A stretch of DNA of 64,000 nt from positions 152,708-216,707 of the forward strand of contig NIVC01001978.1 in NCBI GenBank assembly GCA_002269645.1, in the 5' to 3' direction. The notes beneath the pieces were generated by a model. That model made no database searches. It was not told where the DNA came from and worked only from the letters and a program-made list of their open reading frames with translations. Shown piece after piece: positions 24,470-51,740 of this stretch. Within the stretch, counting starts at the first letter, position 1, and each line of letters starts with the position of its first letter. Source of the stretch: Macrostomum lignano (taxonomy: Eukaryota). The position numbers and the translations under genes are program-made.

Positions 24470-24529
<60 letters not shown>

Positions 24530-28979: not shown

Positions 28980-29699
28980 TCTCGCCACTGCAAGAATCCC
29001 CTGCACAAGTCCCCTCTGTACCTGCATGGCCAATGCGATCGAGTCCCAGCAGTGTCCCTTAACATCGGCTATGACTTCGAGATTGACAGCAAAAAGAAAC
29101 GTGTAGTTGGCAGGTAAGTGCAAAGCCCCTTCTAGTCGGAAGCCCGATTTCGAGAGTCCTGGTGAGCCAGGACGTACGGGCTGGTGGCAGCGAGTTAGCT
29201 AATCTGCGGATTAACTAATTTCTACCTTCAAAATTCTCCCTGCTTGTCTCTCGCTGTCCCTCTCTTAGCTATAGGACCTAGACTGCTCGCCACACGATCA
29301 AGCTACCATGTGGCTGACCATCTGACAGGAGTGGGGGACCAGGACTCTAATTGATTTATTTCTGAGACCTGAGGCCCGAAGGCTTCCCCACGAGGGGGCT
29401 GAAAGGCCGAAACCCATCAATATCCCCAATTTTTTTCTAAAAATTGTTAAAAATTTAGATTTCGGAAGGGTAAGGAGTTTGAAACAATGCACCAAAAACA
29501 GATACATCCGTTCAAAAACCCGCCACCAGCTGTACCAGACGGTAGGAGGCTTCCAGACGCTGACGTCAATCAGAAGATCGCGGCAAGTGTGGCGGGCTAC
29601 GCGCAGAAAAAGGTTAAGAAAAAAGCAAAACGGAAGTTTATGAAAAAGGGGGCTAAATTCACTGGAAAGGTTGTAACGGATATTCTTGACTTTGATTAA
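28980..29699 (+). CDS. Putative last two exons of a small Lys-rich protein of unknown function; HPFKNPPP motif resembles the peptide cluster
   Basis: Exon 28980-29113 (catag|SRHCKNPLHK..KKKRVVG AG|gtaagt) joins in phase 2 to exon 29459-29699 (tttag|A FRKGKEFETMHQKQIHPFKNPPPAVPDGRR..KKVKKKAKRKFMKKG..DILDFD*). Start exon uncertain. Confidence 0.45.
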
Positions 29700-31712: not shown

Positions 31713-33619
31713 GCGCGGACGATATAACACCGCTTGGGTCCTCGATGGCGAATTGCTAGCTCGTACGCCTAGCAAGTAATCAACAAGCGCGCCCCACAGG
31801 TTGAGGATAGTGATGAACACGTCCCGGCCGCTGACGTAGTTGCGCAACCACCTTGACGTACTCACGTAGCAGCCGTGCCAGAAGCAAGTCCCCGACTCCC
31901 CACTTATAGCTTTCCTGATTCCTGAAGGCACTTCCTGAAGTACTGTCAGTTAAAGACTTAATTCCCTGTGTATTATATCAGCCCCCTGCCCTTTGACGAG
32001 TTCTTATTAGTGCCCTTTGAAACATCTCAAATTTTATTTCCAAAGACTTGTTATCGAAGGGGCATGTTGTAGACTACGATCTGCTCTATAACTTCGATGG
32101 CACAGTTTGTTACAGCTGTTACAGCTCGTTGGGGCTTTCATGTTAAACTTTAAGCCTCTCTTAACTCAGCGACTACTCAAACATCATGTTAGGTCAAGTA
32201 CTCAAACTCCGTCAAGTTTTTTTTTGATTAAAATAGAATGCATGCTGGGCAATGTCATGCCACGATCAAATTCACATTTCCTAAATTTCAGCTCTCTGAG
32301 TTAGCCGTTACAACAACAGTAGAACCTTTAATAACAATGTATTTGAATTTGTACTCGGAAAAGTTTACAACGTTAACAAACGTATCCAATCGCTTTAAGT
32401 TATTTTTAATTAAAAAATTTACTTTATTTGTACAAAGAAAAGTTGCACAACAACAGTATAGTTTCAGCAAGTGTTTCTACATTAGGAAGGTATACTATAA
32501 AAGGTACTGAATTCTGATAAACAAAGTGAATGACGGTTAAACTCTAGTGAACTACAAGCTAACATAAACTATTTTTATGATAAAATACTTGGGCCGCTTA
32601 GACACTTGTGTTTAGTAAAATACAATTAGGTTCAGTCATAATGTTCATTGTAAGCCAAGGCAACTGAAATGTACATTGACGTGTACATTAAAATGTACAT
32701 GTACATAAAAATTAGACCTGGGCCTAAGGGTTTAGCTACGGATGGCCTGCAAGGGATGGGACAGAGAAGCAATAAATGAGCCTTTAAGGAATGCAATTAC
32801 AATGCTTTTACTTGTATTTCAACTTCTACTGAACTGAAAGTAGCTTGTATGCTATAATGCGCTGAGTGAATTCACCATCTAGTTGTTACAGTTTGAAACT
32901 TGTATAGTTTTTATAGGCAAGCAGAGCAGATTCTGCTTTTATATCCTACGTACATGTCTCATACCTAAAAATCATAAAAGATTCATGTTTAAAGCTCGAC
33001 TCATTGGTTTTATAAATCTATTTTCTCATTCTGTTACACTTTATTGCTACACACTCAGCTATAAGAGTTTTAATTTTCTAACTTTTCTAAGAATCTAAAT
33101 TTTCCAAGAAACGTTTAGTTTCGGACGCTTCTATACCTGAGTAGTCCCCTCATTATACAGATTTCCCAAGTTCAGAAACAAGATTCCATCTCTTCTTACC
33201 GCTACTGCATCCTTCGGTTGCTATGGGCAACGAAATAAGATTTGTAATCACAACCAGTAGACACAGGAATGCCAAGCATTTACTCAAGTAAGACATTTTG
33301 CTGGCTGCGACAAAATAAAATTAATAATGACCAACGAAATCTGGCATGCGACTACATGTAGGGTTTAGGTAATTCCGACTCTCAGTTGGCGTCTAGGCCA
33401 TAGACATCTGCGTAAAGTACATGTAAGTCAACTTGAAGAAATATTGCACTTTCGCCAGATCTTAGTCAATTATTTGACTTTATATCTTTGCAATCGTCCA
33501 TGGCCAAAATAAACCTAATAAACATAAGCTTTGAGCTAATTTCTAATTCGAGTAGATGATTGCTACCTCTACATCATTTTAGTAAGAGTAAAAAAAGCAT
33601 AAAAATATTAATTTCGAAA

Positions 33620-34033
33620 ATGTCGAGCAGTCAACTTTTCACCAGTCTGTGCTTGCTGGTAACGGCTCTGATGTTAGCTAATGAAGTTCAAGGATGCCCT
33701 AGGCCTATTTTAAGAAGAGGTAAATATCCTAATTTGTGTTCTAGTTGACATGGGCTCTACGTACGATGTAGGAATAATAGGACAGATAGACACGGCGGAA
33801 TAGAGCAGTTCGTCACATCGGAGCCTCTCCTTTCTTCCGCAGTGAAGAACATAAGAAATCCGTTTAAATCGCCGCCACCTCCTCCAAGAAAGAAGCTGGA
33901 CATCAGCTGGCCCGTGAACCGGCCTGTCAAGTCAAAAATGGCCTCAATGAAGTCCATCAATAAGGATTTGAAGAAAATGAAAAAAGCACGGGAAGCGGCT
34001 TATTTTAAAAGAAAGCAGGCCGGCAAGCTATGA
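33620..34033 (+). CDS. Secreted basic peptide precursor, copy A (96 aa)
   Basis: Exon 1 33620-33719 (G|gtaaat), exon 2 33843-34033 (ctttcttccgcag|TG). MSSSQLFTSLCLLVTALMLANEVQG-CPRPILRRVKNIRNPFKSPPPPPRKKLDISWPVNRPVKSKMASMKSINKDLKKMKKAREAAYFKRKQAGKL*. Same exon length and phase in three paralogs; AATAAA in a conserved 3' UTR (~34235). Confidence 0.85.
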
Positions 34034-34529
34034 AGCGAAAAAGTTTACTGCATTGGACAACAAGCTCATGTGGTGTCAAAGAGCTCTACTTTTTACTGAT
34101 CATCGTTTTTGATCAGTCAATGTGAGTTCTTTATTGACTACTAGCACGCTGTTTATTTTTTTGAAGGAGTACGAGTATAGCTTTTTTGTACATTTTTTTC
34201 AGTCACCCTTTTTAACGAGAGTAGCGAAACTTTAATAAATAAAATTGCAAGTTGCAAATAGCTTTTTGCCATAATGAAGCATGTATCCATCTACGAGTTG
34301 CATGTACTCGTACTGAATGCCTAACATGTACAATATTGTCTGCAACGCTCTAGTCGTGTACTCTATAGCTTGTATACAAGCGTAAAGTAATGCATCCAAC
34401 AAATATTCGAAAACGCGTTTTGACATTGATTTTAGCGAAAGAGCTCAAAGTAATAGTGATGCAGTAGTGTAAACATCACTCATAAATTGTAGGTATCGTA
34501 AGGTTTAATTTGAATACGTATTTGCCCCT

Positions 34530-34612
34530 GTGTTCTTCGATCTTGGTCGTGCCGGGATTCTTCGAACTGGGACCTAGGTGCGCTGTCGTCCACTCTGCTG
34601 GACATGGATGGG
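34530..34612 (-). mobile_element. Short non-LTR RT fragment (WTTAHLGPSSKNPGTTKIEEHR), homologous to 47380-47435
   Basis: Degenerate W..A.L.PIPKK.G RT domain-1 motif; DNA similarity to the RTE relic. Confidence 0.55.
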
Positions 34613-34622
34613 GGTCCACCCC

Positions 34623-35401
34623 AACTGCCAGCCGGAAAACTGCCAGCCGACAACTGCCAGCCGACAACTGCCAGCCGACAATTGCCAGCCGAGAAAACTG
34701 CCAGCCGGAAAACTGCCAGCCGACAACTGCCAGTCGACAATTGCCAGTCGACAATTGCCAGCCGAGAAAACTGCCAGCCGGAAAACTGCCAGCCGACAAC
34801 TGCCAGTCGACAACTGCCAGCGGACAAGTTCTAGATAATTGAATCTACTGTAGCCTACTTATTAGCTAAGTAAAAAGCACAAAACTGTTTGGCTAGCAAA
34901 AGGCTTGTGGGGTAGCCTTAAATGTCGCCCTTCTCTTCCCTAAATTTTTCAGATTTCCATTAGAAGTATATATGTGAAGGAGAAGGCATTTTGTAATGCC
35001 TATTGTAAATATTTCTGTATTGAAAGTTTATATTTACTTTATTATTTAATTTGCGATTGCGATTGCTATATGACGCAATCCTAGATAAGTATATTAAATT
35101 ACTTTACTTAAATAAAGCTTTCAAAGAAAGAACAAAGGCTACCTAAAATACAAAATTTGAATGCTTTCTCCTTCAACTGTTGTCGGCTGGCAGATTTCTC
35201 GGCTGGCAGTTGTCGGCTGGCAGTTTTCCGGCTGGCAGTTTTCTCGGCTGGCAATTGTCGACTGGCAGTTGTCGGCTGGCAGTTTTCCGGCTGGCAGTTT
35301 TCTCGGCTGGCAATTGTCGACTGGCAGTTGTCGGCTGGCAGTTTTCTCGGCTGGCAGTCGTCGGCTGGCAGTTGTCGGCTGGCAGTTGTCGGCTGGCAGT
35401 T
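34623..35401. mobile_element. Foldback-like element: inverted arrays of 14-16 bp units (AACTGCCAGCCGAC/GGAA/GAGAA) flanking a ~350-bp AT-rich spacer
   Basis: Array 34623-34826 is the reverse complement in unit sequence of array 35178-35401. No TSD identified. Confidence 0.7.
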
Positions 35402-35691
35402 TACACACTAATTATCTAAGATGTCTTGTCTGCAGTGACAATGGTACAATATAGATCATACTCTTTCGACATTGCTTTTACTGAGAGAAGTCAGAGAAAT
35501 AGTCATGCAGTTCCTGTACGGTGCCGACGTCACTCTCATAGATTTTAGGCATTGAAAAGTTGCATTTGAATACCATCAGCGAGTAGAAATCTCTAACAGG
35601 TAAATACAGAATCATCGTCCATTCATAGAGAATTTTGGCGTCAAGGTCAACTAGCCTACGTTCGCATGGAACAGGGCAGATATAGTCGATA

Positions 35692-36600
35692 GACAAAGTG
35701 GAATGGGGCAGATAGACACAGCGGAATAGGGCAGATAGACACAGCGGAATAGGGCAGATAGACACAGTGGAATAGGGCAGATAGACACAGCGGAATAGGG
35801 CAGATAGACACAGTGGAATAGGGCAGATAGACACAGTGGAATAGGGCAGATAGACACAGCGGAATAGGGCAGATAGACACAGTGGAATAGGGCAGATAGA
35901 CACAGTGGAATAGGGCAGATAGACACAGCGGAATAGGGCAGATAGACACAGCGGAATAGGGCAGATAGACACAGTGGAATAGGGCAGATAGACACAGTGG
36001 AATAGGGCAGATAGACACAGCGGAATAGGGCAGATAGACACAGTGGAATAGGGCAGATAGACACAGTGGAATATGGCAGATAGACACAGCGGAATAGGGC
36101 AGATAGACACAGTGGAATAGGGCAGATAGACACAGTGGAATAGGGCAGATAGACACAGCGGAATAGGGCAGATAGACACAGCGGCATATGGCAGATAGAC
36201 ACAGTGGAATAGGGCAGATAGACACAGTGGAATAGGGCAGATAGACACAGCGGAATAGGGCAGATAGACACAGCGGAATAGGGCAGATAGACACAGTGGA
36301 ATAGGGCAGATAGACACAGCGGAATAGGGCAGATAGACACAGTGGAATATGGCAGATAGACACAGCGGAATAGGGCAGATAGACACAGTGGAATAGGGCA
36401 GATAGACACAGTGGAATAGGGCAGATAGACACAGCGGAATAGGGCAGATAGACACAGTGGAATAGGGCAGATAGACACAGTGGAATATGGCAGATAGACA
36501 CAGCGGAATAGGGCAGATAGACACAGTGGAATAGGGCAGATAGACACAGTGGAATAGGGCAGATAGACACAGTGGAATAGGGCAGATAGACACAGCGGAA
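35692..36600. repeat. 23-bp minisatellite (TAGGGCAGATAGACACAG(T/C)GGAA), ~39 units
   Basis: Direct reading; same family as the arrays in peptide-gene introns. Confidence 0.97.
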
Positions 36601-37576
36601 TGTGACCTCTGGAGATGATCACATAATCACCTGGAAGATTGACCTAACTCCTTGGCTGCCTCTCAAGCTAAAATTGTCGCTTCCATGGGTGGCTACACTG
36701 CTGTCGCCTCTTTTGACTCAGCTGTAGGCGGCTCCAAGCATCCGAGTGCAACGGGAGGCGTCGCTGCCATTCCGCTGACCCCTGGCGATCACGGGCAGCT
36801 GGTGCTGCGGTGTCGCGCAAGGAGATCCAGTATCGTTATTGCTGGTGTCCAAACAGAGTGGTCCCTCAACGGAGAGTTGGATGGTCGCTTGCCCGGTAGC
36901 TCTTAGGTACATGTACGAGTAGCGGACGAACTGGGAGAAATTCTCGGCTTGAAAATGTCAGACTTTCAGTTGCGCACCTGTCAGATTGTAGGAGGCGAGT
37001 GTGACTTCGAGGGCTTCTGTCCATTCGTTGGTTAACTATCTGGGATGAGATGTGTTGATTAAATTTGAATGTACGTAGACTTATGTACATTCATCTCATA
37101 CTCATTCTATGCATGACTTCTTTCTTGTATAAAACTACGATAATTAACAAAAAAGCCATAGAGCTTCTAATATACTAAAATGGTTTGTCGGTAGGTATAT
37201 CTATATTCAGTGATGCAAGTTACATTAAATTCTGATTGCGACGTCAGTCTACTTTGGGACACAGCAGTAAAGGTCTTTAGAAGTTCCAAATCTAAATTTC
37301 CTCTAATCAGCGAAAGTAAATAGGGAAATAATAAGAATCTGCACTTTTGCCGGATTCTATCGCACTTGATTGATCAAATCTTACTTGTCTATGGCAAAAA
37401 ATTACGCAAGTTATGTATGTTGCCGGCTTTTTCGGTAGCAATTTCACTATGCTGAAGCCAGGTAGCAACTCGTAACAACGCGTCTTTGAGCTGTTATAAC
37501 TTCAATTAGATAATTGCCACGCCTGCAACTAAGTAGTACGCGAACCAAGGATATAAAAAGAAAATTTAATGCGAAA

Positions 37577-38663
37577 ATGTCTAGCTGCCAACTTCTCACA
37601 ACTCTATGCGTGCTGGTAATGGCTCTGATGTTAGCTACTGAAGTTCAAGGATGCCCCAGGCCTATTATGGCAAAAGGTAAATATGCTTATTTGTGTTTTA
37701 GCTGATAGGGCTCGAAATACGATTTAGGAACAGACACAGTGGGATAGGGTAAATGGACACAGCGGAATAGGACAGGTAGACAGTGGAGTAGGGTAGATAG
37801 ACACAGCGGAATAGGGCAGGTAGACACAGCGGAATAGGGTAGATAGATACAGCGGAATAGGGTAGATAGATACAGCGGAATAGGACAGGTAGACACAGCG
37901 GAATGGGTAGATAGATACAGCGGAATAGGACAGGTAGACACAGCGGAATGGGTAGATAGATACAGCGGAATAGGGCAGGTAGACACAGCGGAATGGGTAG
38001 ATAGATACAGCGGAATAGGGCAGGTAGACACAGCGGAATGGGTAGATAGATACAGCGGAATAGGGCAGGTAGACACAGCGGAATAGGGCAGGTAGACACA
38101 GCGGAATAGGGCAGGTAGACACAGCGGAATAGGGCAGGTAGACACAGCGGAATGGGGCAGGTAGACACAGCGGAATAGGGCAGATAGACACAGCGGAATA
38201 GGGCAGGTAGACACAGCGGAATAGGGCAGATTGACACAGCGGAATAGGGCAGGTAGACACAGCGGAATGAGTAGATAGATACAGCGGAATAGGGCAGGTA
38301 GACACAGCGGAATAGGGCAGGTAGACACAGCGGAATAGGACAGGTAGACACAGCGGAATAGGACAGGTAGACACAGTGGAATAGGACAGGTAGACACAGC
38401 GGAATAGGCCAGGTAGACACAGCGGAATAGGACAGGTAGACACAGCGGAGCCGCCGCACTCTCCTTCCGCAGTGAAGAGCGTCAAAAATCCGTTTAAATC
38501 GGCGCCACCGCCACAAAAAAAGAAGTTGGACATCAGCTGGCCCGTGAACCGGCCTACCACGTCAAAAAAGGCCCCAATAGATTCCATCAATAAGGATTTG
38601 AAGAATATGAAAAGCCAGCGGGAAGCGGCTTATTTTAAAAGAAAGCAGGCCGGCCGCCGATAA
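37577..38663 (+). CDS. Secreted basic peptide precursor, copy B (96 aa)
   Basis: Exon 1 37577-37676 (G|gtaaat), exon 2 38473-38663 (ctccttccgcag|TG). MSSCQLLTTLCVLVMALMLATEVQG-CPRPIMAKVKSVKNPFKSAPPPQKKKLDISWPVNRPTTSKKAPIDSINKDLKNMKSQREAAYFKRKQAGRR*. Confidence 0.87.
37733..38449. repeat. 23-bp minisatellite array (~31 units) inside the copy B intron
   Basis: Direct reading. Confidence 0.95.
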
Positions 38664-39545
38664 AGCGAAAACAAGTTTACTGTGTTTGACAATAAGCTCA
38701 TGTGGTGGTCAAAGAGCTCTACTTTTTACTGATTATACTCGTAGTTTTTGAGCAGTCAATGTAAGTTTTACTGCCTACTGTTTATTTTTTGAACGAGGAT
38801 GAGTAGCTTTTTTATGTTATTTTCAGTCACCAATTTTGTTTTTAATGAGAGTAGCGAAACTGTAATAAATAAAATTGCAAGTTAGACAATAGCTTTATTG
38901 CCGTAATGAAGCATGTATCCATCTACGAGCCGTACGAGTTACGTGTACTCGTACTGAATGCCTAAGATGTATTGTATGCAACGCTCTACTCTACATATAC
39001 ATGTATATCTATATGTATGCATGTTATTTATTTACTTTTACTAACAGATGTATTACATCATTTTACCTCCTATTTTGAACAAATTCAAAAGAAACAAGCA
39101 GAACTTCAATTCAAACACTTTAAGAAACAACAGCCCTTGCGAAACTTCAATTCAAACGAAGTCCCTTTCTATTCTTCAGAAGAGAAGAACTTCAATTCAG
39201 ACTGTCTGTGGTCAAAATTGTCCCCGAATGACGCGCATGCGCAGATTTGAAATTCAAAAGAAACAAAGTCGCATTCTATTTCGACAAAGGGATAAAACAC
39301 AGCATATCGACGAACATAAGAGTAAAATGAAAAACAGGAACAAGACAGTGTCAGTTGGCCAACTTGAGACACCTAACCATCAATTGCCTGTCCACCAAGG
39401 CAGCGAGGGAAGCATGTAAACACATGGTTGAACCACTCAGTGCTTGACTTGACTTACTTGACTTAGCTGCAGGGCTGTCCCGGAGGGGACACAGCGGGAA
39501 GGCGCGGGCGCCCATTCCGCTAGTCCCTGAACGGCCGACGCGTCG

Positions 39546-42500
39546 CTATGGACGGAGGGTTGGCGCCGCCCAGGGAGGTCCCCCAGTGTCGCCAGCAGCT
39601 ATGGTGCTCTCTGGAAAGGAGAGTTCAGCCCTGCGGGTGGCCCGAAGGTAGCGCATGAGCTGATTAAAGTTTTCGGGTTTGCACGCTTCAGTAATAGATG
39701 TGTGTGGCCCGAGGTAAGTGAGTCTGGCCCGCGTGAAGGCGGGACAGATGCTGACGAAATGCTCAGCGGTTTCGTCACCTGAGTTGCAGAAACTACAGGT
39801 GGCGTTGGTGGCGTTGCCCTGCAGGTACTGGTGCCTGGAGAAGCAGCCGTGACCAGAGAGGGTCATGGTGGCAGCCCGGATGTCTCTGCGCGAGAGGCGC
39901 AAGAGGAGCTTCCGGAGCTGGTGAGAGGGCTGAGGGACAGCGCCTCTGGATTGCCTGCAGTTCGTGCGGTTCGCCCAAGTCGAGCGGTGCTGAGTCCTGA
40001 TCCACGCTTTGATGCGCGAGTCGATGACACAGCCAGGAATCGGGACAAGAGGTTCGGGGCCGAGAGAGGAGCCGGAGGCACCAACTTTTGCAAGGGTGTC
40101 AGCCAACTCATTTCCTCGGATCCCCACATGCCCCGGAACCCACTTAAGGGTAATTTTGTTGGCGGAACCCAACACATTGAGGAGTTTGATACAGTCAAGG
40201 ACTGTAGCAGAGTTGGTGCTGCAGCCACTGATGGCGTGCAAGGCAGCTTGGCTGTCCGAATGGAAAATGATGTTCTTACCAGTAACGCCAGTGGCGAGAA
40301 GCTCTGCAGTGCAGGAGCTGATGGCCAGAACTTCATTTTGGAAAACACTGGAGTTGACCCCAGTGTATTGAGCGTGGGTAGCGATGACCCTCCCGTTCAG
40401 AAAGATTCCAACACCAAAGCCGGTGTTGGCTGACTGCTTAGAACCGTCGGTGTAGCAATGAAGCTCACCAGGGTTCCAATGGTCATTGATGTTATCGCGC
40501 GAGTCGATAGCTACGGAGTAGCGCTGTCTCAGGTTGAGCGTTGAGGCAATGCCATCGGTGAAGACGCGATTGGCCTGACACTCGTTGAGAAAGTTGAGGC
40601 ACAGATCGCTATGCGGGACAAGGTTCCGCTTAGCAGGTGCTCTCATGTAAATGAATTTGACGCCGGCATCAATTAGACGCCGCGTCGTTCTAGCCGCCTC
40701 ACCCCTGATGAAGAGGTCAAGAGGCGGAAGATTAAGGAAGGCCCCCATGCCAGCAAAGGGCGTGGACCTGGTGGCGTTGCAGATGAGCCTACACGCTCTG
40801 CCTTGGATCGTGTTGAGCAGGTCTGCATGGCTTTTGACCTGGGTAGCGCTAACCCAGACAACAGAGGCGTACGTAATGGCAGGTCTAACTACGGAAGTAT
40901 AGATCCACCAAAGCCGCTTTGGGGATAGACCCCAAGAAGTGCCAAGTGCTCGTCGGAGCTGGGCCAGGATGGCTGAGGCACGCTTGGCTTTTGCTTTCAC
41001 GTGGAAGGACCAGTTGAGCCGGTGGTCAAGTGTGACCCCGAGACATCTGGTCTGGTGCGCGAAGGCAATATCTCTGCCGTAGAGCTGCAGAGGACGTATG
41101 TTCCAGCGTAGTCTGCTGGTAAACATAATGGCAACGGTTTTGGGCTCAGAGAGTTCCAGACCATTGTCATTGGCCCAGGATTCTGCTTTGCGGATAAAGC
41201 TCTGCATCAGATCCCTGAGCGTGCTGGGAGACGGTCCTGCCACAATGGCCGTGACGTCATCAGCATACCCGACTTTGAAGACGGGGTCGGGTCGGGAGTC
41301 ACTCAAAAGAGCGTCCATGACCAGGTTCCAGAGCGTCGGGGTGAGGACTCCGCCTTGGGGTCCACCCTTACAGACTCTGGTGGAGGCAGTTTGCCCAAGA
41401 AGTTGGGCAGTGACCGTACGGTTGGAGATCATGTACATGATCCACCGTATGAGGGTAGCATGAGCTTTGCGATTTTGAAGGGCCCTCTGAAACGCTTCAA
41501 AGATAACGTTGTCGAAGGCGCCAACAATGTCAAGAAAGAGAGCCAGAGCGTAACCGTCACCCAGTACCGCCCTTTCAATCTTCTCGACAATCGCATGCAG
41601 GGCGCTGTCAGTCGACCTCCCGGTACGGAAGGCGTGCTGATTATTGCTGAGGGGCATCGCTGTCAGCTCGCAGGACAGCAGCCGCCAGAGAATAAGCCTC
41701 TCAGTGAGCTTAAGCATTGCTGACGTTAAGCTAATAGGCCGGAAGGCCTTGACGCTTTGGTAGTCACCCTTCCCAGGTTTGGGAATAAAGACTACCCGAG
41801 CTTCAGTCCAGCATTTGGGAACGTATCCCAGCTGGATAGAGGCCCGCATAAGATTGCGGGTGAGTCTCAGGAACGAGGGTATCTTGGCTGCTTCACGAAG
41901 GAGAACAGGGTAGATACCATCAGGTCCAGGAGATTTGAAGGGTTTGAAGGTTCTGACCGCACGAGCGATTAGGTCTTCAGTGACAATGCCCGCCGCTAGG
42001 GTGGCTCCATCCATCGAATGGTTGGGCTCCGGTCTAGCAGTAGGTACCCTCGGGAAGAATGTGCTAAGCATATGCTGAAGCACTTCTTCAGGGTCTTTAG
42101 TAAGAGAGCCATCATCTTTTTTGATCATGGCTAATTTGGACATTTTGTCCATTGTAAGGGCCTTGACAAGCCTAGAAGTAGGTCTGTCTTGATCCAATTC
42201 ATTGCAGAATTGGCGCCACTTACATTCCTTGGCCTTGCGCACTTCAGATTTGAAATTGCGGGAGGCTTGCCGGAAAAGCTCCATGTCCTCCGGGTTTCCG
42301 GTCTTCATGGCACGGCGATGAAGGCTTTTGGCCTTCCGCCTGAGTTTCCCCAGCTCCGGGTTCCACCACGGCGCCGAGGTCTTGCCTTTGTAGGCGCGAG
42401 CAGGACAAGCCGCTTCGTAGGCTTCAATAATGCAACCTGTCAGCGTCTCAGCCATATGATCCACATCCTCGCAGGTCTCAATCGGACGTAAGTCCGTGAG

Positions 42501-43286
42501 TTCCTGCAGGTGCAGATCAAGGGCAGCCTTGTAGGCCGCCCAATCAGTGTTGCGGATATTGCGTCTCCAAGTGATCGGAGACTGGGTTTTAGTGTCCGCG
42601 ATGTTAAAGGCGATAAAGCAGTGGTCAGACAGGGAGGGCTCCTCAGACCAGACTCTCCACTCCTCAACTCTGTCAAAGAGTCTTGGGGTAACGAGTGTGG
42701 CGTCGAGGACCTCGGTCCATCTGCCATTATTAAAGGTAGGAGTGCTGCCGCGGTTGCAGAGCATGAGGTTTGTGTTAGAGATGAGGGCCAGAAGCTCCTC
42801 TCCTCTAGTGTTGGTATCTTTGCTGCCCCAGTGCTTGTGGTGCGCGTTGAGGTCGCCCCCTAAGCACAGCTCAGCGTTCTGGGACTCGCAGTACTGCGCG
42901 AGGCGCAGTAAACTCTCAGGAGCAGGGTCTCTGTCGCCTGGGATATAAACCGAGGCAACAAGACACGTACGCGGAGAGAAATGATTAGATTGGATGACGC
43001 AAAGGTCTCCATCAGAGAGATCAGTCCTCAGCCAAGCCTGGAGATGGCTAGCAGCGAGGATAGCCGCTCTAGGGCGGCTGTTCCCCGGGCCACACACATA
43101 AAAATCAGAGTAGCCAGAGGGAATGTTGGGCAACTTACCGTTGCGCATCCAGGGTTCCTGGATCAGGATGAGGCCTGGCCTGTACAGCTCAGCAATCTTC
43201 ATCAGATTTACTGACGCAGATACGCAATGCTGTAAATTAATTTGCAGACAGAATGTCGCTCCTTTGGCAGCGTGGAGCTTAGTCAT
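39546..43286 (-). CDS. LINE ORF2 (APE endonuclease - reverse transcriptase - RNase H - CCHC), 1246 aa, intact
   Basis: QINLQH, IQEP, GGDLNAHH, LDATL, SDH (APE); PGPDG, IPKPGK, LDIVGAFD, PQGGVL, YADD (RT); YTDGS, NE, SDS, WVPGH..GNELAD (RNase H); CSFC..HFVSIC. Confidence 0.97.
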   Translation of the reverse strand: MTKLHAAKGATFCLQINLQHCVSASVNLMKIAELYRPGLILIQEPWMRNGKLPNIPSGYSDFYVCGPGNSRPRAAILAASHLQAWLRTDLSDGDLCVIQSNHFSPRTCLVASVYIPGDRDPAPESLLRLAQYCESQNAELCLGGDLNAHHKHWGSKDTNTRGEELLALISNTNLMLCNRGSTPTFNNGRWTEVLDATLVTPRLFDRVEEWRVWSEEPSLSDHCFIAFNIADTKTQSPITWRRNIRNTDWAAYKAALDLHLQELTDLRPIETCEDVDHMAETLTGCIIEAYEAACPARAYKGKTSAPWWNPELGKLRRKAKSLHRRAMKTGNPEDMELFRQASRNFKSEVRKAKECKWRQFCNELDQDRPTSRLVKALTMDKMSKLAMIKKDDGSLTKDPEEVLQHMLSTFFPRVPTARPEPNHSMDGATLAAGIVTEDLIARAVRTFKPFKSPGPDGIYPVLLREAAKIPSFLRLTRNLMRASIQLGYVPKCWTEARVVFIPKPGKGDYQSVKAFRPISLTSAMLKLTERLILWRLLSCELTAMPLSNNQHAFRTGRSTDSALHAIVEKIERAVLGDGYALALFLDIVGAFDNVIFEAFQRALQNRKAHATLIRWIMYMISNRTVTAQLLGQTASTRVCKGGPQGGVLTPTLWNLVMDALLSDSRPDPVFKVGYADDVTAIVAGPSPSTLRDLMQSFIRKAESWANDNGLELSEPKTVAIMFTSRLRWNIRPLQLYGRDIAFAHQTRCLGVTLDHRLNWSFHVKAKAKRASAILAQLRRALGTSWGLSPKRLWWIYTSVVRPAITYASVVWVSATQVKSHADLLNTIQGRACRLICNATRSTPFAGMGAFLNLPPLDLFIRGEAARTTRRLIDAGVKFIYMRAPAKRNLVPHSDLCLNFLNECQANRVFTDGIASTLNLRQRYSVAIDSRDNINDHWNPGELHCYTDGSKQSANTGFGVGIFLNGRVIATHAQYTGVNSSVFQNEVLAISSCTAELLATGVTGKNIIFHSDSQAALHAISGCSTNSATVLDCIKLLNVLGSANKITLKWVPGHVGIRGNELADTLAKVGASGSSLGPEPLVPIPGCVIDSRIKAWIRTQHRSTWANRTNCRQSRGAVPQPSHQLRKLLLRLSRRDIRAATMTLSGHGCFSRHQYLQGNATNATCSFCNSGDETAEHFVSICPAFTRARLTYLGPHTSITEACKPENFNQLMRYLRATRRAELSFPESTIAAGDTGGPPWAAPTLRP

Positions 43287-43413
43287 ACTGTATTAAATGC
43301 AATATCTGGCTAGAGCCCAGGGCCATCAAGGAGACTTGGACAACAGATCGTCCTCGTCCCAGGCCGCTGGGGCTTGACTGGGAGATGGGAGTTGGTCGAC
43401 GTCCATGGCCTCC

Positions 43414-44885
43414 TCACCCCACCGGCCCCCCAGCAGAGTCCTCAGGCTCCGATGACAGGATGGAGGAAGCTTCCTCACCTGCATCTTTACCTTCAGACCC
43501 CACCAAGGTGGCCGAGGAGAGCTCGGATTCCGAAGACCCGGCCTCGTCCTCAACTCCTTCTCCGACTGGCAGGTTTGGTTCCCGGGGCTTGGCCGGAGCC
43601 GTTACCGCGGTCGCCGAACTGCTGCTAGCAGAGGGGCGAGATGCAGCTTTGGCTTTGGGATCGGCTTGCGCCTTTCCTTGGGCCTTAGACTGCGCCCCGC
43701 TCTTGCCGGAGATGCCGGGGTTGGCAGTAGCCTTCCCTTTGGCAGACTTTCCTCGGCGCATCTTGAGCTTGAGGGCACCCAGCTGGAAAGAGGATCCATT
43801 AGGGTACCGACTCGCCCAAGTGCTGGAAAGGCCGAGGACAATTGAGTTGCCCGTCTCCCCCCTGCGGACTTTACGGTGATACACCAGTCCACTAGCAGGG
43901 AGGTCGGGGTTCAGACGCAGTAGGACCCGGCGAATAACGTCTGGTCCAGCTGCGGTGCTCTTAGCAGGGACGAAAACCACATAGGGTATCGTCTTTGGAC
44001 GCTGGCCCTCGCGAAGAAAAAGAGCTCCGCCAAGGTCAGCATCCAAGGAGACCGTCGGTAGCCGCTGGAGCAGCCGCCGAGCGTCCTCCTCGCTGCTAGG
44101 AGCAATAAGAACGAATGTGCTTCGCAGCACCATCCGCTCAATGCCGATGGAGATTCCCTCCTCGACAGTCAGCTCAATCAGATAGGAGTCAACAGCACTC
44201 CACACTTTTTGAAGCTGATCAGTGGTCCAGTCCTGGTCGCGACCTTGGATGATCACTCCCGGGATTTTGGCCTTGGCCTTCGCCGCAAAGGTAGCTCCCG
44301 AAGGAACCTCCTTGTTGGCAGTGGCCATTTGTTGCGCCGTGGTTTCGGCCTCAGCAGCCGCGGCAGCAGCTCCAGGGAGCGCCGCCGCTGAACTACTGGA
44401 GCTTCCACCGGCCGGCCCGCCTGGTTGCCTTGGGACTCCAGTCGCTTCAGCATCCATGGTGGACGCCGCCGCTTTGGCCCCGCAGCTCCCTTCTTGGCCT
44501 GCCTTTTGGCGCGTTGTTTAGCGCGTTTGCGCTCAAGCCGAGCCCGCTGAGCTTCATCGGATCTGCCAGATTTGGCCGGTCCTTTAGGCTCAGAGCTCGC
44601 GGTTCCCTTAGATCCACCAGCGGAGCTGGCAGGTCTTTGGGTATTTTGAGTTTGGTAGCTCTGGTCGGATCTGCCAGCAGAGCCAGCCGGTCCTTCCTTT
44701 GCCACAGTTGAATCAGTCGGTTGGGATCTGCCAGCAGGGCCGGCCGGTCCTTCGGACTGAGGTTGGGGTTTAGAAGGGTCCCCGTCCCTAGAGTTAGCTT
44801 GATTATCCATAGACGGCTCGAAGGCCATGATAAAAGGTTGGTGGGCTACCCTCAAAGGGGCGCGGTACCCACCCGGCCGCTCCAC
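43414..44885 (-). CDS. LINE ORF1 (gag-like, no CCHC knuckle), split by an apparent 1-nt frameshift near 44480
   Basis: Upstream frame 44885-~44480 (basic RARLERKRAKQRAKRQAKK) joins the 44457-43414 frame if one G is added to the GGGG run (44478-44481). The central domain resembles LOA-type ORF1 (recalled, not searched). Confidence 0.7.
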
Positions 44886-45883
44886 CTGACCGGGCAGTAG
44901 GCCAATAGCACCCTCAAGGCTGGCCCGACACCAGGAGGGGGACCGCTTGCGACCGGACTACTCCCCGGCCTTCCAGCCCATCGGCACGGTCAACACCTTA
45001 GGCATTAGAGAGTACGTTGAGCAGTACCACGGCCTGCAGGTTGGCGAGCCAGACCCGCATACCCAAATTCGGCCGAAGCCACTGGATAGGGTCGCCAGCG
45101 CCGGAGCCCAGTCTGTCCAGCAGCCCTAGGGACTGCCTTGAACACACGCGGGGACGAGTACCCTGGGTCGACTTGCGAGACAGCGTGGGGGGGGTCTGCG
45201 GCTGCCAGAGGCAAATAGAGGGTGCAGACCTCCCACCAGCCTTGACCTGCTGAAGATAGGGGCAGGCGTGAAGCATCGCAGACCTTAGCCCATGGGCCTA
45301 GTCTGTCTCATACTTCACTGGCATGCTGAATACGCCTTCGCGTGCAACCACTCAGTGCACTTGTCCACAGAGATGCAGCCAATGGTTCTGTCCACCATGC
45401 TGTACAGAATGTCTCGCCGATAGGTCGCAATCGACTGATTCCCGTGCTATTCACCGATTCCACCTTCTTCCAGCAATTCATCGTCTTCTTCAATCTGATC
45501 TTCAGTATTCATATCGTTTCTTATTGCGCAACGATTGTACAGTTTTTCAGTACAGGAAAAACAAAAAATTAGATTAATGTACTAAAAATGTACTCGTATC
45601 TAAATGTATGTGCAAAAATTTCTGTCGAAATAGAATGTGACTTTGTTTCTTTTGAATTTCAAATCTGTGCATGCGCGTCATTCGGGGACAATTTTGGCCA
45701 CAGACAGTCTGAATTGAAGTTTTTCTGTTTCAATAGAAAGGCACTTTGTTTGATTTGAAGTTTCGCAAGGGCTGATATTTCCTAAAGTGTTTGAATTGAA
45801 GTTCTGCTTGTTTCTTTTGAACAAGACTTTGTTCAAAATAGGAGGTAAAATGGTGTATACGTTTAAACAAATATAAAAATACA

Positions 45884-45884
45884 A

Positions 45885-45935
<51 letters not shown>
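45884..45935. repeat. (CAA)n microsatellite
   Basis: Direct reading. Confidence 0.95.
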
Positions 45936-45936
<1 letters not shown>

Positions 45937-45964
45937 AGCAAAAACAACGATAAAATGCATTGTC

Positions 45965-47440
45965 AGCCAGTCAAGAGTGAGCCTGGGTCACAGGGCTCGT
46001 TTCAAGGCCTGGGCGCGAATGTAGGCCGCACCGCCGGCATCATATCAGTCAGCAGGCAGTCGACGAAACGCCGAGTGCGCACCTGCCCTGCCGGTAGGGT
46101 GCCTGCAGCTTGAGCAACAGCACCTTCGGCACCGGTTGTGAGCAGTACGACTCAGCTTGGATGTGGCCTGCCAGATGGAGTTGCCCGGTGCGCAACAGTT
46201 CGCTAGGACGGGACAGGCCGGTGCGGCGGTAGAGTGCCGCATTGGTGACTCGCTCGTAGCCGCACTTGTAGCGCCTAGCAGTCCTCGCGAACGTCAGGCA
46301 TCAGACCGCCGATGTAGACGAACTGCTGACAGCGCGGAAGCCTCGTCCCCTGTCTGTCAGCGTCTCGGCAGAAAATTGCAGCCTCGATGTCGCCCGGCAC
46401 GCAGAGCACGACGGTCTTTCGCGTGTTGATTACCAGTCCGACACTTACTGCAACGCTCAACAGCCAGTCTAGCTGGCGCTGGGCGCCCTCGAGGGTCGAG
46501 GACAGCAAGGTAAAATCTTCGACGTAGTCAAGCACGCCGAGCCGCCTCTCCGGTTGGCGAAGACCCACGCGTCGTTGCAGCAGGAAGCCGTCGTCGGTAG
46601 AAGGGAGCTAGGGCGGTTCGCAGCACCCAGTCAAGCAGCAGGACGAACAGGAATGGCTCAAGCGTATCTCCCTGAAGCACCCCAGAGGATGTCTCAAAGA
46701 AATCCGACAGGCCGTCCGGTGTCCGCATAGCAGCTCTCGTGCCATGGTACAGCGCCATGACGGCGGAAATCAGCTGCTCTGGCACGTTGAACATCACAAT
46801 TGTAAGCACCATTGGGAGCACGGCCCTCACGACCTTCCTGAAGTCAATAAGAGAGTAATCAGGCTGGACTGGGGGTCCGCGCTTCCTCGATGACTCGCCG
46901 AAGAGCCAGGATCTGCGCCACTGTGCCGCGCGTGTACACGGTTTCTTCGGAATAGCGATTTCGGGCACCTCGTCCGGACCCAGCGCTTTGCCACCCGAAG
47001 TCTTTGAGCGAGCATCACAACGTCGGCTGTGCTGACTTGTGCTACATTGAAACCCTCTGTCAGCAAAATACCGTCCCCTGCGGCAGCCTCAGATCGTTTG
47101 GCAGCGGGGGCGACGTTATTTCTTCCACTGATCCGGATTGCGAGCTGGGTTGAGCGGGATGCTCCACTTCCGCCCGGTCAGAGCGTTGATGACGGACCAG
47201 GCCGCGCGCCGTTTGGCGTCGGGTCCAGCAGCGGTGACGCCCTGGATGGCTTCGTCAACAGCAGCCTGTTGTCGCTGCAGGTAGACAGCCGCCAGAGGCT
47301 CCTCGGCCCCACGCAAGATCTTGTTGAAGAGCTTCGGGGTGCACAATATCAGCTACGAGTGTATATTCTCCTGTGTTAAATGATCCTGATCGTACCTGGC
47401 TTTTTCGGAATGGGAACAAGGTGCGCTGTCGTGGCTATAC
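45965..47440 (-). mobile_element. Degenerate, internally rearranged RTE-like non-LTR retrotransposon relic
   Basis: Pieces: TAHLVPIPKKPG; PKLFNKIL; AAWSVINALTG; KALGPDEVP; LIDFRK; SSGVLQGDTLEPFLF; LDYVED (decayed YADD); GLVINTRKT; FVYIGG. Multiple frameshifts. Confidence 0.85.
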
Positions 47441-47844
47441 CAAAGTTTGAAACTAGTGCAACAGGTGCTGTAAAGTTTCTGTTTGAAAGAAACATTCTGC
47501 TGGGTTTCAGTTTGCGAAGGTGTCAAGAGCAAACGGGAGTTGATTGTCTGGAAGTCTCGGATTCTCTGCGCACCTTGCCTTTATGATGCCAGTCTTCAGG
47601 ACACCCGACGCGACTAAATTGTTTTGAGCTAAAAATATACTTGTAATAAACATACTCCTACAAGTGCTGCCGCTCTTTGGTCTATGAGAATAAATAACGC
47701 TTTTAAATATATTTTTAGTCTATGGTCCAAAACCAAACTTCCGGCGGAACGCGAAAATCGGCTTCACTTTTTAAAAGCTTCGTTGGCATTCTATGTATAC
47801 TCAATATTCTCTGGTACTACTTAATTATCAAATGTCTGTGGTTA

Positions 47845-47958
47845 AACTCGTAAAAACACGACTTTATGGTGTAGAAAAAAATTCGCTTCTACAAACTATT
47901 AGTACGCGAGTTAGAATGTAATTTTAGTAAACAATTTTACGCGAAAATGTCAACCTGA
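47845..47958 (+). pseudogene. Relic of a fourth peptide-gene copy (upstream region plus ATG, then immediate stop)
   Basis: AACTCGTAAAAACACGACTTT..TAGTACGCGA..TTTTACGCGAAAATGTCAA aligns with the region upstream of copy B (AACTCGTAACAACGCGTCTTT..TAGTACGCGA..TTTAATGCGAAAATGTCT) and copy C. Reads ATG TCA ACC TGA and runs straight into the 23-bp array. Confidence 0.6.
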
Positions 47959-47960
47959 AA

Positions 47961-48902
47961 GACACAGTGGAATAGGGCAGATAGACAGCAAAATAGGGCA
48001 GATAAACACAGTGGAATAGGGCAGATAGACACAGTGGAATAGAGCAGATAGACACAGTGGAATAGGGCAGATAGACACAGTGAAATAGGGCAGATAGACA
48101 CAGTGGAATAGGGCAGATAGACACAGTGGAATAGAGCAGATAGACACAATGGAATAGGGCAGATAGACACAGTGGAATAGGGCAGATAGACACAGTGGAA
48201 TAGGGCAGATAGACACAGTGGAATAGGGCAGATAGACACAGTGGAATAGGGCAGATAGACCCAGTGGAATAGGGCAGATAGACACAGTGGAATAGGGCAG
48301 ATAGACACAGTGGAATAGGGCAGATAGACACAGTGGAATAGGGCAGATAGACACAGTGGAATAGGGCAGATAGACACAGCGGAATGGGGCAGATAGACAC
48401 AGTGGAATAGGGCAGATAGACACAGTGGAATAGGGCAGATAGACACAGCGGAATAGGGCAGATAGACACAGTGGAATAGGGCAGATAGACACAGTGGAAT
48501 AGGGCAGATAGACACAGTGGAATAGGGCAGATAGACACAGTGGAATAGGGCAGATAGACACAGCGGAATGGGGCAGATAGACACAGTGGAATAGGGCAGA
48601 TAGACACAGCGGAATAGGGCAGATAGACACAGTGGAATAGGGCAGATAGACACAGCGGAATAGGGCAGATAGACACAGTGGAATAGGGCAGATAGACACA
48701 GTGGAATAGGGCAGATAGACACAGTGGAATAGGGCAGATAGACACAGTGGAATAGGGCAGGTAGACACAGTGGAATAGGGCAGATAGACACAGTGGAATA
48801 GGGCAGATAGACACAGTGGAATAGGGCAGATAGACACAGTGGAATAGGGCAGATAGACACAGTGGAATAGGGCAGATAGACCCAGTGGAATAGAAACAGT
48901 GG
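47961..48902. repeat. 23-bp minisatellite (TAGGGCAGATAGACACAGTGGAA), ~41 units
   Basis: Direct reading. Confidence 0.97.
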
Positions 48903-49229
48903 AACAATCTGATTTATAGTTAAACCGGTGAGACGAAGTCAAGGCAGATAGCACGAGAGGCGCAAGTTCCAGTCTGGCCGCAGTAATACGAGCGTACGAG
49001 CGTACTGTATTTACGTAAACTCGTATTTACGAGTATTTACTTTATTTTAAAGGACTCAAAACTTAGAACATCTTGGAGACTTAAAAGAGAAAAATCGACA
49101 CGTACTTAGCGGGCCAGAGGCGCTAAATAAAGGCACCCAAACCGATGGCACGGGACCAAAGCACGGCCCCACCACCCCGCATCAAAGCACAAGAGCCACG
49201 CCCCACTGGTTTAACACCCTACCAAACTA

Positions 49230-49651
49230 AACCCGATCGGACCATTACTACGAGCATACATAGTAGGGGAGAAATATGCTCTGCAATAGCACGTCGAACG
49301 CTAATATACTCCATATGTGGAGGCGTACCTTCGAACTGGTCAGCAATTACCGCATGAAAAAAAACAATTTCCATCACCGGCAATAGAAACTGTTTAGGAC
49401 GAAGCAGCAGGTGTAAGAGTAATAGGAATTTGCATCTCCCATTCCGCCTACAATTGGAACACCAACGTCCACCACGAAGCCGAACGCCTCGTCAACCTAT
49501 CCTCCCGTTCAGATGAATCGTTTACAGCCGCGTGCGTCTTCTTCCTACCAATGTTCGATGCCTCTCCTACCTGTGAACACGTTTCAAGTCGTGATCGACA
49601 CTCACACTGATTTTTTAGTCGAAGCTGGCGTTCACTCTCAGACTCAGGCAT
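49230..49651 (-). pseudogene. OTU cysteine-protease domain relic, possibly Helitron-derived
   Basis: VSIAGDGNCFF/HAVIADQFEG..YISVRRAIAEHI with a +1 shift in an 8-T run (49357-49364). Upstream ESERQLRLKNQ..R.R segment is reminiscent of Helitron N-terminal repeats. Confidence 0.55.
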
Positions 49652-50498
49652 TTGTCGGAACGAAATTTTAGCGCTGAGGCGGAAGGCCTTCTTAGTTCAA
49701 TAGATGCAATGGCAGCAAAGATTTTGCGCTGCTTTGTGCGTATATTTATATTTACACAAACAGCGCGATATTGAGGGGAATAGGGAGGTGCGAAAAGGTG
49801 GCGTGGCGTGATTGGCTACGCCAACTCCCCCCCCCCGGCTTCGCGAGCCGGCTAGCTTAGTGAGCACCCACCCCACCTCAGCTAGACAGAGGTTGGGGGG
49901 TTTCCAGTGCGGCTGCACTGGTGCTGCCGGTCGCGTACAGTCTGGCCGCCACAGCGCAAAATTAATCTACACCAAATTAAACTTCTTACATCTTAGAGAT
50001 TCTCACCGTGAGCCTTAAAATTCTTACTTCGTTGATCAAAAACAGTACTTTAAGCAATAGTCTAGAAATCAATCAATTCCAGAAAAAGAACATCTTGGTT
50101 AGCATCAGCATTGACATCTCAAACAATAACGAAAAGATATGCTTTTATCCTTTCAAACTTTTAAAAAAATTCAACACCATTTGCATATCAAGTCTGCACT
50201 AGATAAATTCTAAATATTCTGTAATAAGTGAAATAATAAAAACTTGCACTTTTGCGAAATTCTATCGCAGTTGGTTGACCATATCTTACTTGTCAACTTG
50301 TCTGTGGCAAAAAATAACGCAAGTTATGCTTGCTGCCAGAAATTTTATCGGCAGCAATTTCACTACGCTGGTGCCGCATAGCCACTCGTAACAACGCGTC
50401 TTTAAGCTGTTGTAACTTCAGTTGAAGAACTGCCACCTCTACAACTGATTAGTTCACGAGCCGAAAATCAAAACAAATCTAGAAATATTAATACGAAA

Positions 50499-51740
50499 AT
50501 GTCAAGCTGCCAACTTTTCACAACTCTGTGCCTGCTGATAATGGCTCTGGTGATAGCTACTGAAGTTCAAGGATGCCCCAGGCCTATTATGGCAAAAGGT
50601 AAATCTGCTAATTTGTGTTTTAGCTGATATGGCTCGAAATAAGATTAAGGATTAGAGTAGATACACACTGTAAAATAGGGCAGATAGACGCAGCAAAATA
50701 GGGGCAGATAGATACAGCAGAATAATAAGGCAGATAGACACAGTGGAATATGGCAGATAGACACAGTGGAATAGGGCAGATAGACACAGTGGAATAGGGC
50801 AGATAGACACAGTGGAATAGGGCAGATAGACACAGTGGAATAGGGCAGATAGACACAGTGGAATAGGGCAGATAGACACAGTGGAATAGGGCAGATAGAC
50901 ACAGTGGAATAGGGCAGATAGACACAGTGGAATAGGGCAGATAGACACAGTGGAATAGGGCAGATAGACGCAGCAAAATAGGGGCAGATAGATACAGCAG
51001 AATAATAAGGCAGATAGACACAGTGGAATAGGGCAGATAGACACAGTGGAATAGGGCAGATAGACACAGTGGAATAGGGCAGATAGACACAGTGGAATAG
51101 GGCAGATAGACACAGTGGAATAGGGCAGATAGACACAGTGGAATAGGGCAGATAGACACAGTGGAATAGGGCAGATAGACACAGTGGAATAGGGCAGATA
51201 GACACAGTGGAATAGAGCAGATAGACACAGTGGAATAGGGCAGATAGACGCAGCAAAATAGGGGCAGATAGATACAGCAGAATAATAAGGCAGATAGACA
51301 CAGTGGAATAGGGCAGATAGACACAGTGGAATAGGGCAGATAGACACAGTGGAATAGGGCAGATAGACACAGTGGAATAGGGCAGATAGACACAGTGGAA
51401 TAGGGCAGATAGACACAGTGGAATAGGGCAGATAGACACAGTGGAATCGGGCAGATAGACACAGTGGAATAGGGCAGATAGACACAGCGGAAAAGGGCAG
51501 ATAGACACAGCGGAGCCGCCCCACTCGCCTTCCACAGTGAAGAGCGTCAAAAATCCGTTTAAGTCGGCGCCACCAAAGAAGAAAATGGACATCAGCTGGC
51601 CCGTGAACCGGCCCGCCATGTCTCAAGCAGAACGGGCGGCTACGAAGGCGAAGATGCAAAAGCAGGTCCCCGCTCAAGAACTCGTGAATAGAATGACGGA
51701 AGCTAACAAGAAGCGAAAAGAGGCTGCTGCTCAGGGCTGA
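50499..51740 (+). CDS. Secreted basic peptide precursor, copy C (100 aa)
   Basis: Exon 1 50499-50598 (G|gtaaat), exon 2 51538-51740 (ccttccacag|TG). MSSCQLFTTLCLLIMALVIATEVQG-CPRPIMAKVKSVKNPFKSAPPKKKMDISWPVNRPAMSQAERAATKAKMQKQVPAQELVNRMTEANKKRKEAAAQG*. About 250 bp upstream also aligns with copy B. Confidence 0.87.
50670..51513. repeat. 23-bp minisatellite array (~36 units, with recurring variant pair) inside the copy C intron
   Basis: Direct reading. Confidence 0.95.

Follow-up and report, generated by a model that had tools for sequence, protein, structure and literature searches.

In cathelicidin and frog dermaseptin precursors, a conserved signal and N-terminal region is followed by a basic processing site and a diversifying cationic C-terminus, and the genes are duplicated and clustered. 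Proline-rich antimicrobial peptides, such as drosocin, pyrrhocoricin, apidaecin and Bac7, are short, cationic and rich in Pro and Arg, with repeated PRP or PxP motifs. The helminth defence molecules (HDMs) of trematodes, FhHDM-1 and Sm16, are flatworm-specific and are made as precursors of ~90-100 amino acids (aa) with a signal peptide, giving a secreted peptide of ~8 kDa with a C-terminal helix; the C-terminal ~35 residues are largely hydrophobic and amphipathic and form the most conserved part (PMC3093369). In the flatworm Macrostomum lignano, 76 prostate-limited transcripts were reported, 31 of them without a BLAST hit, and signal peptides were found in 38 of 65 (Weber 2018, PMC5977470). 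Here a tandem family of M. lignano genes for small, strongly basic and probably secreted peptides is described from a stretch of 64,000 nucleotides (nt) (assembly Mlig_3_7, GCA_002269645.1, contig NIVC01001978.1, positions 152,708 to 216,707 of the forward strand), which is called the window and to which all positions below refer unless another contig is named.

Three two-exon genes on the same (+) strand, A, B and C, were read and spliced in the window, giving products of 96 aa for A and for B and 100 aa for C with intact frames. In gene A, exon 1 (33620-33719, 100 nt) started with ATG and encoded a 25-aa signal-like leader and CPRPILRR. The phase-1 intron (33720-33842, 123 nt, GT..AG) held ~2 units of a 23-bp repeat which was expanded in the introns of B and C, and the coding part of exon 2 (33843-34033) carried the core and a Lys-rich tail of the A/B type, with the stop codon TGA and an AATAAA poly(A) signal (34234-34239) ~200 nt past it. 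Gene B was composed of exon 1 (37577-37676, 100 nt), an intron of 796 nt (37677-38472), in which 37732-38449 was the 23-bp minisatellite AGACACAGCGGAATAGGGCAGGT, and the coding part of exon 2 (38473-38663), with AATAAA at 38864. Gene C had its own ATG and leader in exon 1 (50499-50598), an intron of 939 nt (50599-51537) with the 23-bp minisatellite at 50659-51514, and an exon 2 coding part (51538-51740) whose core was homologous to that of A and B, with AATAAA at 51955. The introns of B and C were thus nearly all minisatellite. In all three genes the donor was G|GTAAAT, the acceptor was a polypyrimidine tract ending in CAG, the intron was in phase 1, and AATAAA was located 200-215 nt downstream of the stop codon. 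A conserved upstream (promoter) region was present before gene B (37319-37576, +), whose TATAAAA-like element stood 24 nt upstream of the ATG, and sequence comparison placed its equivalents at 50221-50498 (+), the C-type promoter, for gene C and at 33529-33619 (+) for gene A; in this comparison, B and C shared 81% identity across 421 nt. The indels between the copies were all in frame. An earlier reading of this DNA, made without database searches (the sequence-only reading), had proposed these three genes, and every coordinate and junction, together with the 100-nt exon 1 and the phase-1 GT-AG intron of each copy, held when the sequence was read and spliced again.

The product of gene A was identical, residue for residue, to the deposited proteins PAA62065/PAA62673 (Mlig009388.g1/g2), and that of gene B to PAA84953 (Mlig020625.g1), which was annotated on a sister contig; all of them are named "hypothetical protein". 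The gene models of Mlig_3_7 were built solely on RNA-seq and transcript evidence, using StringTie, TACO, a de novo transcriptome, and trans-splicing and poly(A) data (Wudarski 2017, PMC5730564), so the junctions 33719/33843 and 37676/38473 were transcript-supported. Transcripts of A and B thus exist and have the predicted splicing. A, B and C are real genes, since the in-frame indels, the excess of synonymous changes between B and C, the poly(A) signals and the identity of A and B to transcript-derived proteins argue against chance. The sequence-only reading had noted that a list of open reading frames misses the genes, their exons being split; A and B are not unannotated, being already deposited. 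Its call for spliced transcripts was answered in part: A and B matched transcript-derived proteins, while the own junction of gene C was unsupported and the deposited model joins its second exon to exon 1 of B.

That deposited model of 100 aa, Mlig027967 (PAA62066, PAA62672), fused exon 1 of B exactly with exon 2 of C, 13.9 kb apart, and no model for gene B itself was deposited on NIVC01001978.1. The third gene of the sister contig NIVC01000353.1 combined exon 1 of the B type with exon 2 of the C type, so Mlig027967 may be the transcript of that gene mapped to this contig; possibly, the model reflects real splicing between the two genes. Another deposited model, Mlig033008.g1 (94 aa), spanned both copies of C exon 2 on NIVC01000353.1 (10001-18283 of the stretch L001 described below) and had a tail which read as a frameshifted repeat of C exon 2, so from its sequence it looks like a mis-join between the two copies. 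The deposited annotation of these tandem paralogues is therefore likely to hold errors, in Mlig027967 and in Mlig033008.g1.

Alignment of the A, B and C precursors gave the leader MSS(S/C)QL..(N/T)EVQG|CPRPI, with GCPRPI and V34 invariant, then the invariant core NPFKS(P/A)PP..(R/K)KK(L/M)DISWPVNRP, and then a basic tail. The hydrophobic h-region of the leader was 15 residues long (6-20), with a mean Kyte-Doolittle value of 2.4-2.8, and V at -3 and G at -1 were present in A, B and C. By these h-region and -3/-1 heuristics, the leaders of A, B and C, and of the further member F described below, which had the same layout with Y-G|C at the predicted cleavage site, are likely cleavable signal peptides, and the peptides are likely secreted. 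The predicted mature peptides of 71-77 aa were rich in Lys and had 19-28% Pro and one PRP motif in the first 36 residues, and the single Cys of each of A, B and C stood at position +1. The mature A peptide had 23 K/R vs 3 D/E in 71 aa and a pI of 11.6, and the pI of mature B and C was 11.0 and 10.7. The 25-aa hydrophobic leader ending EVQG|CPRPI, the lone Cys at the mature N-terminus, the invariant core and the exact charge count of copy A had all been given in the sequence-only reading and were borne out.

A basic site, RKK/KKK/RR, was kept in all members including F, right before a conserved Leu or Met, and the position of a downstream basic site varied among the copies or the site was absent. 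The C-termini were ..AGRR in B and ..AQG in C, and ..AGKL in A and ..DFD in F, the last two without an amidation signal. The AlphaFold2 model of A had a helix in the leader (4-23), a non-regular part at low confidence (24-68) and a helix at 69-95 with a pLDDT of ~95; that of C had helices at 63-74 and 79-98, at lower confidence than in A, and a non-helical part at low confidence (24-62). The sequence-only reading had described a Lys/Arg-rich helical tail after the core. It was basic in all copies and modelled as helical in A and C, whereas the tail of C was unrelated at the nucleotide level to that of A and B.

The family was larger than the cluster of three paralogues first proposed: A, B and C are paralogous, and remnants of two further members, D and F, were also found in the window, giving the order F-remnant, A, B, D-remnant, C. 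Remnant F (29505-29699, +), which was first met as a weak match 4.1 kb upstream of A with HPFKNPPP followed by a Lys-rich open reading frame (ORF), proved to be what is left of a divergent member, namely the 3' part of its second exon (..PFKNPPPAVPDGRRLPDADVNQ..KKVKKKAKRKFMKKG..). The same gene was complete and unannotated on NIVC01001911.1, with exons at 5075-5168 and 5507-5718 of the compared stretch (L002). Its exon 1 was 94 nt long with the donor GTAAATAG (GTAAATA), its phase-1 intron of 338 nt held a different minisatellite of its own, and its product had 101 aa (MLLNHTAIGLCLLLMSLVLDAGYG|CAPPIAKRVLSKGNPFKNPPLAVPDGRRLPDADVNQ...KKVKKKAKRKFMKKG...DFD). In the window and on NIVC01000353.1, F has lost ~923 bp by deletion, from the promoter through exon 1 and the intron to nt 20 of exon 2. 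By BLASTP, F matched A, B and C with E values of 3e-8 to 6e-7 over residues 10-44, at 46-50% identity, and despite this divergence the phase-1 intron, NPFK.PP and the dibasic site were kept. The mature F peptide was of 77 aa, 8.4 kDa and pI 10.3, with one Cys at +1. Invariant in all four types were leader residues L10, C11, L13 and L17, then G|C, P-I, V34, NPFK, PP, the basic site and a Lys-rich tail.

Remnant D (47845-47960, +) was composed of two collinear promoter blocks and ATGTCAAC with the ATG at 47947, the remainder of exon 1 and the whole of exon 2 being lost. After the first 10 nt of the coding sequence it ran straight into a 23-bp minisatellite of ~40 units (47960-48893). Its alignment score was 30 vs a shuffle mean of 17.9 +/- 2.9, a second collinear block was present in addition, and the structure was the same on the sister contig. 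In a six-frame profile scan of the window and the compared loci, no member beyond A, B, C and F was detected. Between A and B, a free-standing array of ~40 units of the repeat found in introns B and C was present (35688-36601). It is not claimed as the remnant of a further copy, since the similarity of its flank was not above shuffles and no piece of a gene was detectable beside it; the array could have come from the intron of a lost copy or could be a transposed array.

Between B and C, codons 26-61 gave a dN of 0.013 and a dS of 0.281, with 1 non-synonymous and 5 synonymous changes (Fisher p=0.0013). Over codons 1-61, omega was 0.25 for B vs C (p=0.011), 0.45 for A vs C (p=0.03) and 0.52 for A vs B (p=0.08). 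The N-terminal module is under purifying selection. In the tail, A vs B gave a dN of 0.228 and a dS of 0.074 (omega ~2.8, not significant), and the tail of C and most of its 3' untranslated region had no nucleotide similarity to A and B apart from a ~40-nt block where the poly(A) signal lies. No sequence relationship linked the three tail types (A/B, C and F), yet all were polybasic. The purifying selection on signal and core and the fast tail evolution which had been expected were thus supported by dN/dS of A, B and C.

No Pfam match was obtained for A, B or C at E<=10, and matches in PDB were noise (E>=0.6). An indexed search of 5.8 billion clusters with three-sequence profiles and with four-sequence profiles including F returned only three M. 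lignano clusters, and an exhaustive HMMER search of 1.84 billion representative proteins returned two matches, both from M. lignano (Mlig020625 and Mlig033008). As far as sequence searching can tell, the family is restricted to M. lignano, at most to its close relatives. The full-text literature had no mention of the four gene IDs, the protein and UniProt accessions or the peptide motifs, and in the literature search no paper on Macrostomum antimicrobial peptides and no usable Macrostomum single-cell atlas were found. The family is undescribed in the searchable literature, and its proteins are already deposited as hypothetical proteins. The sequence-only reading had recognised no known family and had implied a lophotrochozoan host; both agree with these results, the database matches being solely M. 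lignano's own proteins and the host being a flatworm.

Compared with the HDMs, the family had the same lineage-specific flatworm format of an ~8 kDa peptide with a predicted signal peptide and a C-terminal helix, without recognisable domains. In contrast to the HDMs, the tail of A, B and C was hydrophilic, non-amphipathic and the least conserved part, and the N-terminal half was disordered in the models of A and C where that of HDMs is helical. There was no alignment to the C-terminal peptide of FhHDM-1, and HMMER gave no trematode match among the 1.84 billion representatives. Membership in the HDM/Sm16 family was rejected, because the mature peptide was not predominantly helical, the tail was not amphipathic and sequence homology was undetected.

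With cathelicidin and dermaseptin precursors, A, B, C and F shared a conserved N-terminus, a basic site, a rapidly diversifying cationic tail and clustered genes, whereas the N-terminal module here was basic and Pro-rich, with neither a cathelin domain nor an acidic propiece, the tails were non-amphipathic, and cleavage at the basic site was putative. The cationic, Pro-rich N-terminal segment with PRPI at its N-terminus resembled the proline-rich antimicrobial peptides, from which it differed in the single PRP, the preference for Lys over Arg and the mature length of 71-77 aa unless cut at the tribasic site, without homology. The Mlig-pro1-76 set of the same species also had many short, signal-bearing members without BLAST match, though this family was not in the set annotated by in situ hybridisation (ISH). 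Flatworm prohormones were similar in the signal peptide, the conserved basic site and the C-terminal Gly(+basic) of B and C, and different in that here there were no conserved second site, no cross-species conservation and long polybasic tails. A linear amphipathic alpha-helical antimicrobial peptide of the cecropin/LL-37 type was rejected, the peptides being cationic yet the tail helix being without amphipathicity.

With moderate confidence, the locus is read as tandem, lineage-restricted genes for ~8 kDa secreted polycationic effector peptides, with host defence or surface secretion as first choice. The gene structures, the transcription and splicing of A and B, the paralogy, the N-terminal constraint and the absence of homologues were shown; secretion, processing, target and role are inferred. 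In this arrangement, exon 1 would encode the cleavable signal peptide and the first 7-8 mature residues, with the mature start at G|C-x-x-P-I, and exon 2 would encode a conserved, disordered Pro-rich module (V....NPFK..PP and the di-/tribasic site) and then an interchangeable, fast-evolving, hydrophilic and mostly helical Lys/Arg-rich tail. The peptides would be released by a secretory or gland cell type and could act outside the cell by electrostatic binding of polyanions, such as microbial envelopes, sulphated glycans and mucus, or nucleic acids. Specificity would be supplied by the conserved N-terminal module, the unpaired N-terminal Cys may form a disulphide dimer or a tether to a partner, and no pore would be formed through an amphipathic helix.

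Several observations weigh against such effector peptides. The hydrophobic moment of the tail helix was 0.21-0.27, not above shuffles, and its mean hydrophobicity was -0.41 to -0.51; the tails are not amphipathic, so the commonest antimicrobial mechanism, the lytic helix, does not apply. The n-region of the leader was uncharged and a strongly basic segment lay behind the h-region, a charge pattern that could speak for an N-out anchor which stays uncleaved. For gene C, the deposited proteins did not include a product of its own two exons, and its exon 1 was without direct transcript support. The gene IDs, three in some of the searches and all four in others, were absent from the searched supplements of Weber 2018, Brand 2020, Grudniewska 2018, Mouton 2018, the Cells 2026 paper and Wudarski 2017. 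In the comparison of redundant contigs, exons and flanks were both ~99% identical, so these contigs give no added evidence of constraint.

A rather unlikely explanation is that the genes encode seminal-fluid peptides of the prostate gland; these would pass to the partner during mating and affect it, and their tails would diverge through sexual conflict. The peptides were short, predicted to be secreted, lineage-restricted and fast-evolving, copy number at the locus has turned over, and many prostate-limited transcripts of M. lignano are likewise orphan and signal-bearing (PMC5977470). Against this stands Table S11 of Brand 2020, the complete ISH-annotated transcript table, which includes the mapped Mlig-pro genes and in which none of Mlig009388, Mlig020625, Mlig027967 and Mlig033008 was present. 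In this table, ISH patterns from the literature (prostate, antrum, gonads, cement glands and others) are carried over to this transcriptome for screened candidates only, with some probes unmapped, and because the screen covered ~150 candidates the absence is only weak evidence against a seminal-fluid role. The primers of six of the unmapped probes, a part of Table S11, also had no match to the window.

It is distinctly unlikely that the genes encode neuropeptide or peptide-hormone precursors, which would be cut at the di-/tribasic site to give an active C-x-x-P-I...NPFK..PP peptide, an (L/M)DISWPVNRP peptide or both. The predicted signal peptide, the RKK/KKK/RR site conserved before Leu/Met in all members including F, and a most conserved segment which begins exactly at the mature N-terminus would all fit a prohormone, and the ends ..AGRR of B and ..AQG of C could be amidation signals. 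However, the ends of A (GKL) and F (DFD) were without such a signal, the second peptide was without a conserved downstream cleavage site, and no peptide copy was repeated within the precursor. Neuropeptides are also usually conserved across flatworms, whereas the A/B/C/F family was without a homologue in the searches, and long polybasic helical tails would be atypical as spacer peptides.

A structural, adhesive or matrix secretion, from rhabdites, mucus, cement or shell glands or adhesive organs, would condense or cross-link polyanions and use the Cys as a covalent link. The extreme net charge (pI 10.3-11.6), the disordered Pro-rich segment and the one unpaired Cys conserved in every member are consistent with it, but the repeats, the Gly/Tyr/DOPA-type composition and the large size of known adhesive proteins were lacking, the IDs were not among the ISH-annotated antrum, cement-gland or adhesive transcripts, and fast-evolving tails are unusual in structural proteins, so that this role is very doubtful. 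Highly improbable is a non-secreted protein that keeps its hydrophobic N-terminus as an N-out anchor and exposes the basic, SH3-ligand-like Pro-rich part (PPPPPRKK) to the cytosol: the uncharged n-region and a net charge of ~+3 over the 15 residues behind the h-region fit the positive-inside rule of membrane topology, but the h-region is only ~15 residues long, the polar c-region with V at -3 and G at -1 is conserved, and the conserved block starts exactly at the predicted cleavage site in all five types.

Two sister contigs, NIVC01001911.1 and NIVC01000353.1, carried versions of the locus which were 92-100% identical. Such redundant versions are expected, since the assembly holds 180 Mb of duplicated blocks at least 95% identical, from extra large chromosomes (PMC5730564). 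Two promoter types were recognised in the alignment of window 37458-37740 and 50380-50660 with 3569-3850 and 9882-10165 of the compared stretch of NIVC01000353.1 (L001). On NIVC01000353.1, gene B carried the C-type promoter, and the third gene was a mosaic of the C-type promoter, a B-type tract from the ATG to ~55 nt inside the intron, and the C-type exon 2. The aligned copies thus show mosaic gene conversion, which moved promoter/exon-1 modules between the tandem copies. Gene F was intact on one redundant contig and lost on two. The turnover of the family, with copies deleted or truncated, presence/absence differences and gene conversion, is of a kind typical for effector families.

Two further differences were noted on NIVC01000353.1. 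The C exon 2 and its intron array occurred twice, at 11348-11550 and 18134-18336 of L001, ~6.8 kb apart, with one copy in the window; the doubling is either a real duplication or an assembly artefact. In exon 2 of copy A (L001 209-400) one nucleotide was inserted, either as a frameshift or as an indel error of the long reads.

A bolder proposal, to which little credence is given, is that the locus works as a modular diversity generator: promoter, signal peptide and Cys/Pro-rich N-terminus would form a conserved address module, and recombination across the phase-1 intron, with its recombination-prone minisatellite, would combine this module with interchangeable polybasic tails. Recombination could proceed by gene conversion, as in the promoter and exon-1 swaps, by deletion and duplication, as in D, F and the doubled C exon 2 of the sister contig, and possibly by genuine splicing between genes, with exon 1 of B joined to exon 2 of C (Mlig027967). 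The repertoire of secreted cationic peptides would in this way change quickly under host-microbe or sexual conflict, and the invariant N-terminal Cys would serve for dimerisation or lipidation.

The cluster was split by a 5.9-kb non-LTR retrotransposon between B and D (39444-45345, -), which was not a family member. Its ORF1 (43414-44457, 347 aa) and ORF2 (39546-43286, 1246 aa, with endonuclease, reverse transcriptase and RNase H) were intact, and it had a 13-bp target-site duplication AACCACTCAGTGC and a TTGAC-type repeat at the 3' end. On each sister contig the target site was empty; the insertion is therefore recent, and the element is possibly still active.

Upstream of the family, a deposited short-chain dehydrogenase (adh_short) was located at ~23964-25889 (-), and downstream at ~52700-60500 (+) an NHL-repeat protein was recognised by sister-contig homology; for neither was a functional connection with the peptide genes evident. 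At 20874-21392 (+) lay a long, nicotinic-receptor-like exon of a Cys-loop ligand-gated ion channel, which covers the last part of the ligand-binding domain and the first part of the transmembrane region. The region 1-4400 was a degenerate (GA)n-rich, purine-skewed repeat of ~4 kb, and ORFs with C2H2-like Cys/His motifs and long poly-Q tracts, without Pfam match, were present at 4666-9505. Across the window there were dozens of distinct minisatellites with periods of 14-47 bp, which fits the reported 15% tandem-repeat content of the genome.

Families of clustered, fast-evolving genes for secreted peptides that are specific to one lineage are familiar, and in this respect the locus is ordinary and opens no long-standing question. 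It reveals likely annotation errors at tandem paralogues, and it is a clean case of the turnover of an orphan gene family in a neopolyploid genome, accompanied by intronic minisatellite expansion. If the products are indeed effector peptides, this would be the first defined family of that kind in M. lignano, a flatworm model with working transgenesis, and a small, tractable family with which host defence, surface secretion and reproductive function would be testable.

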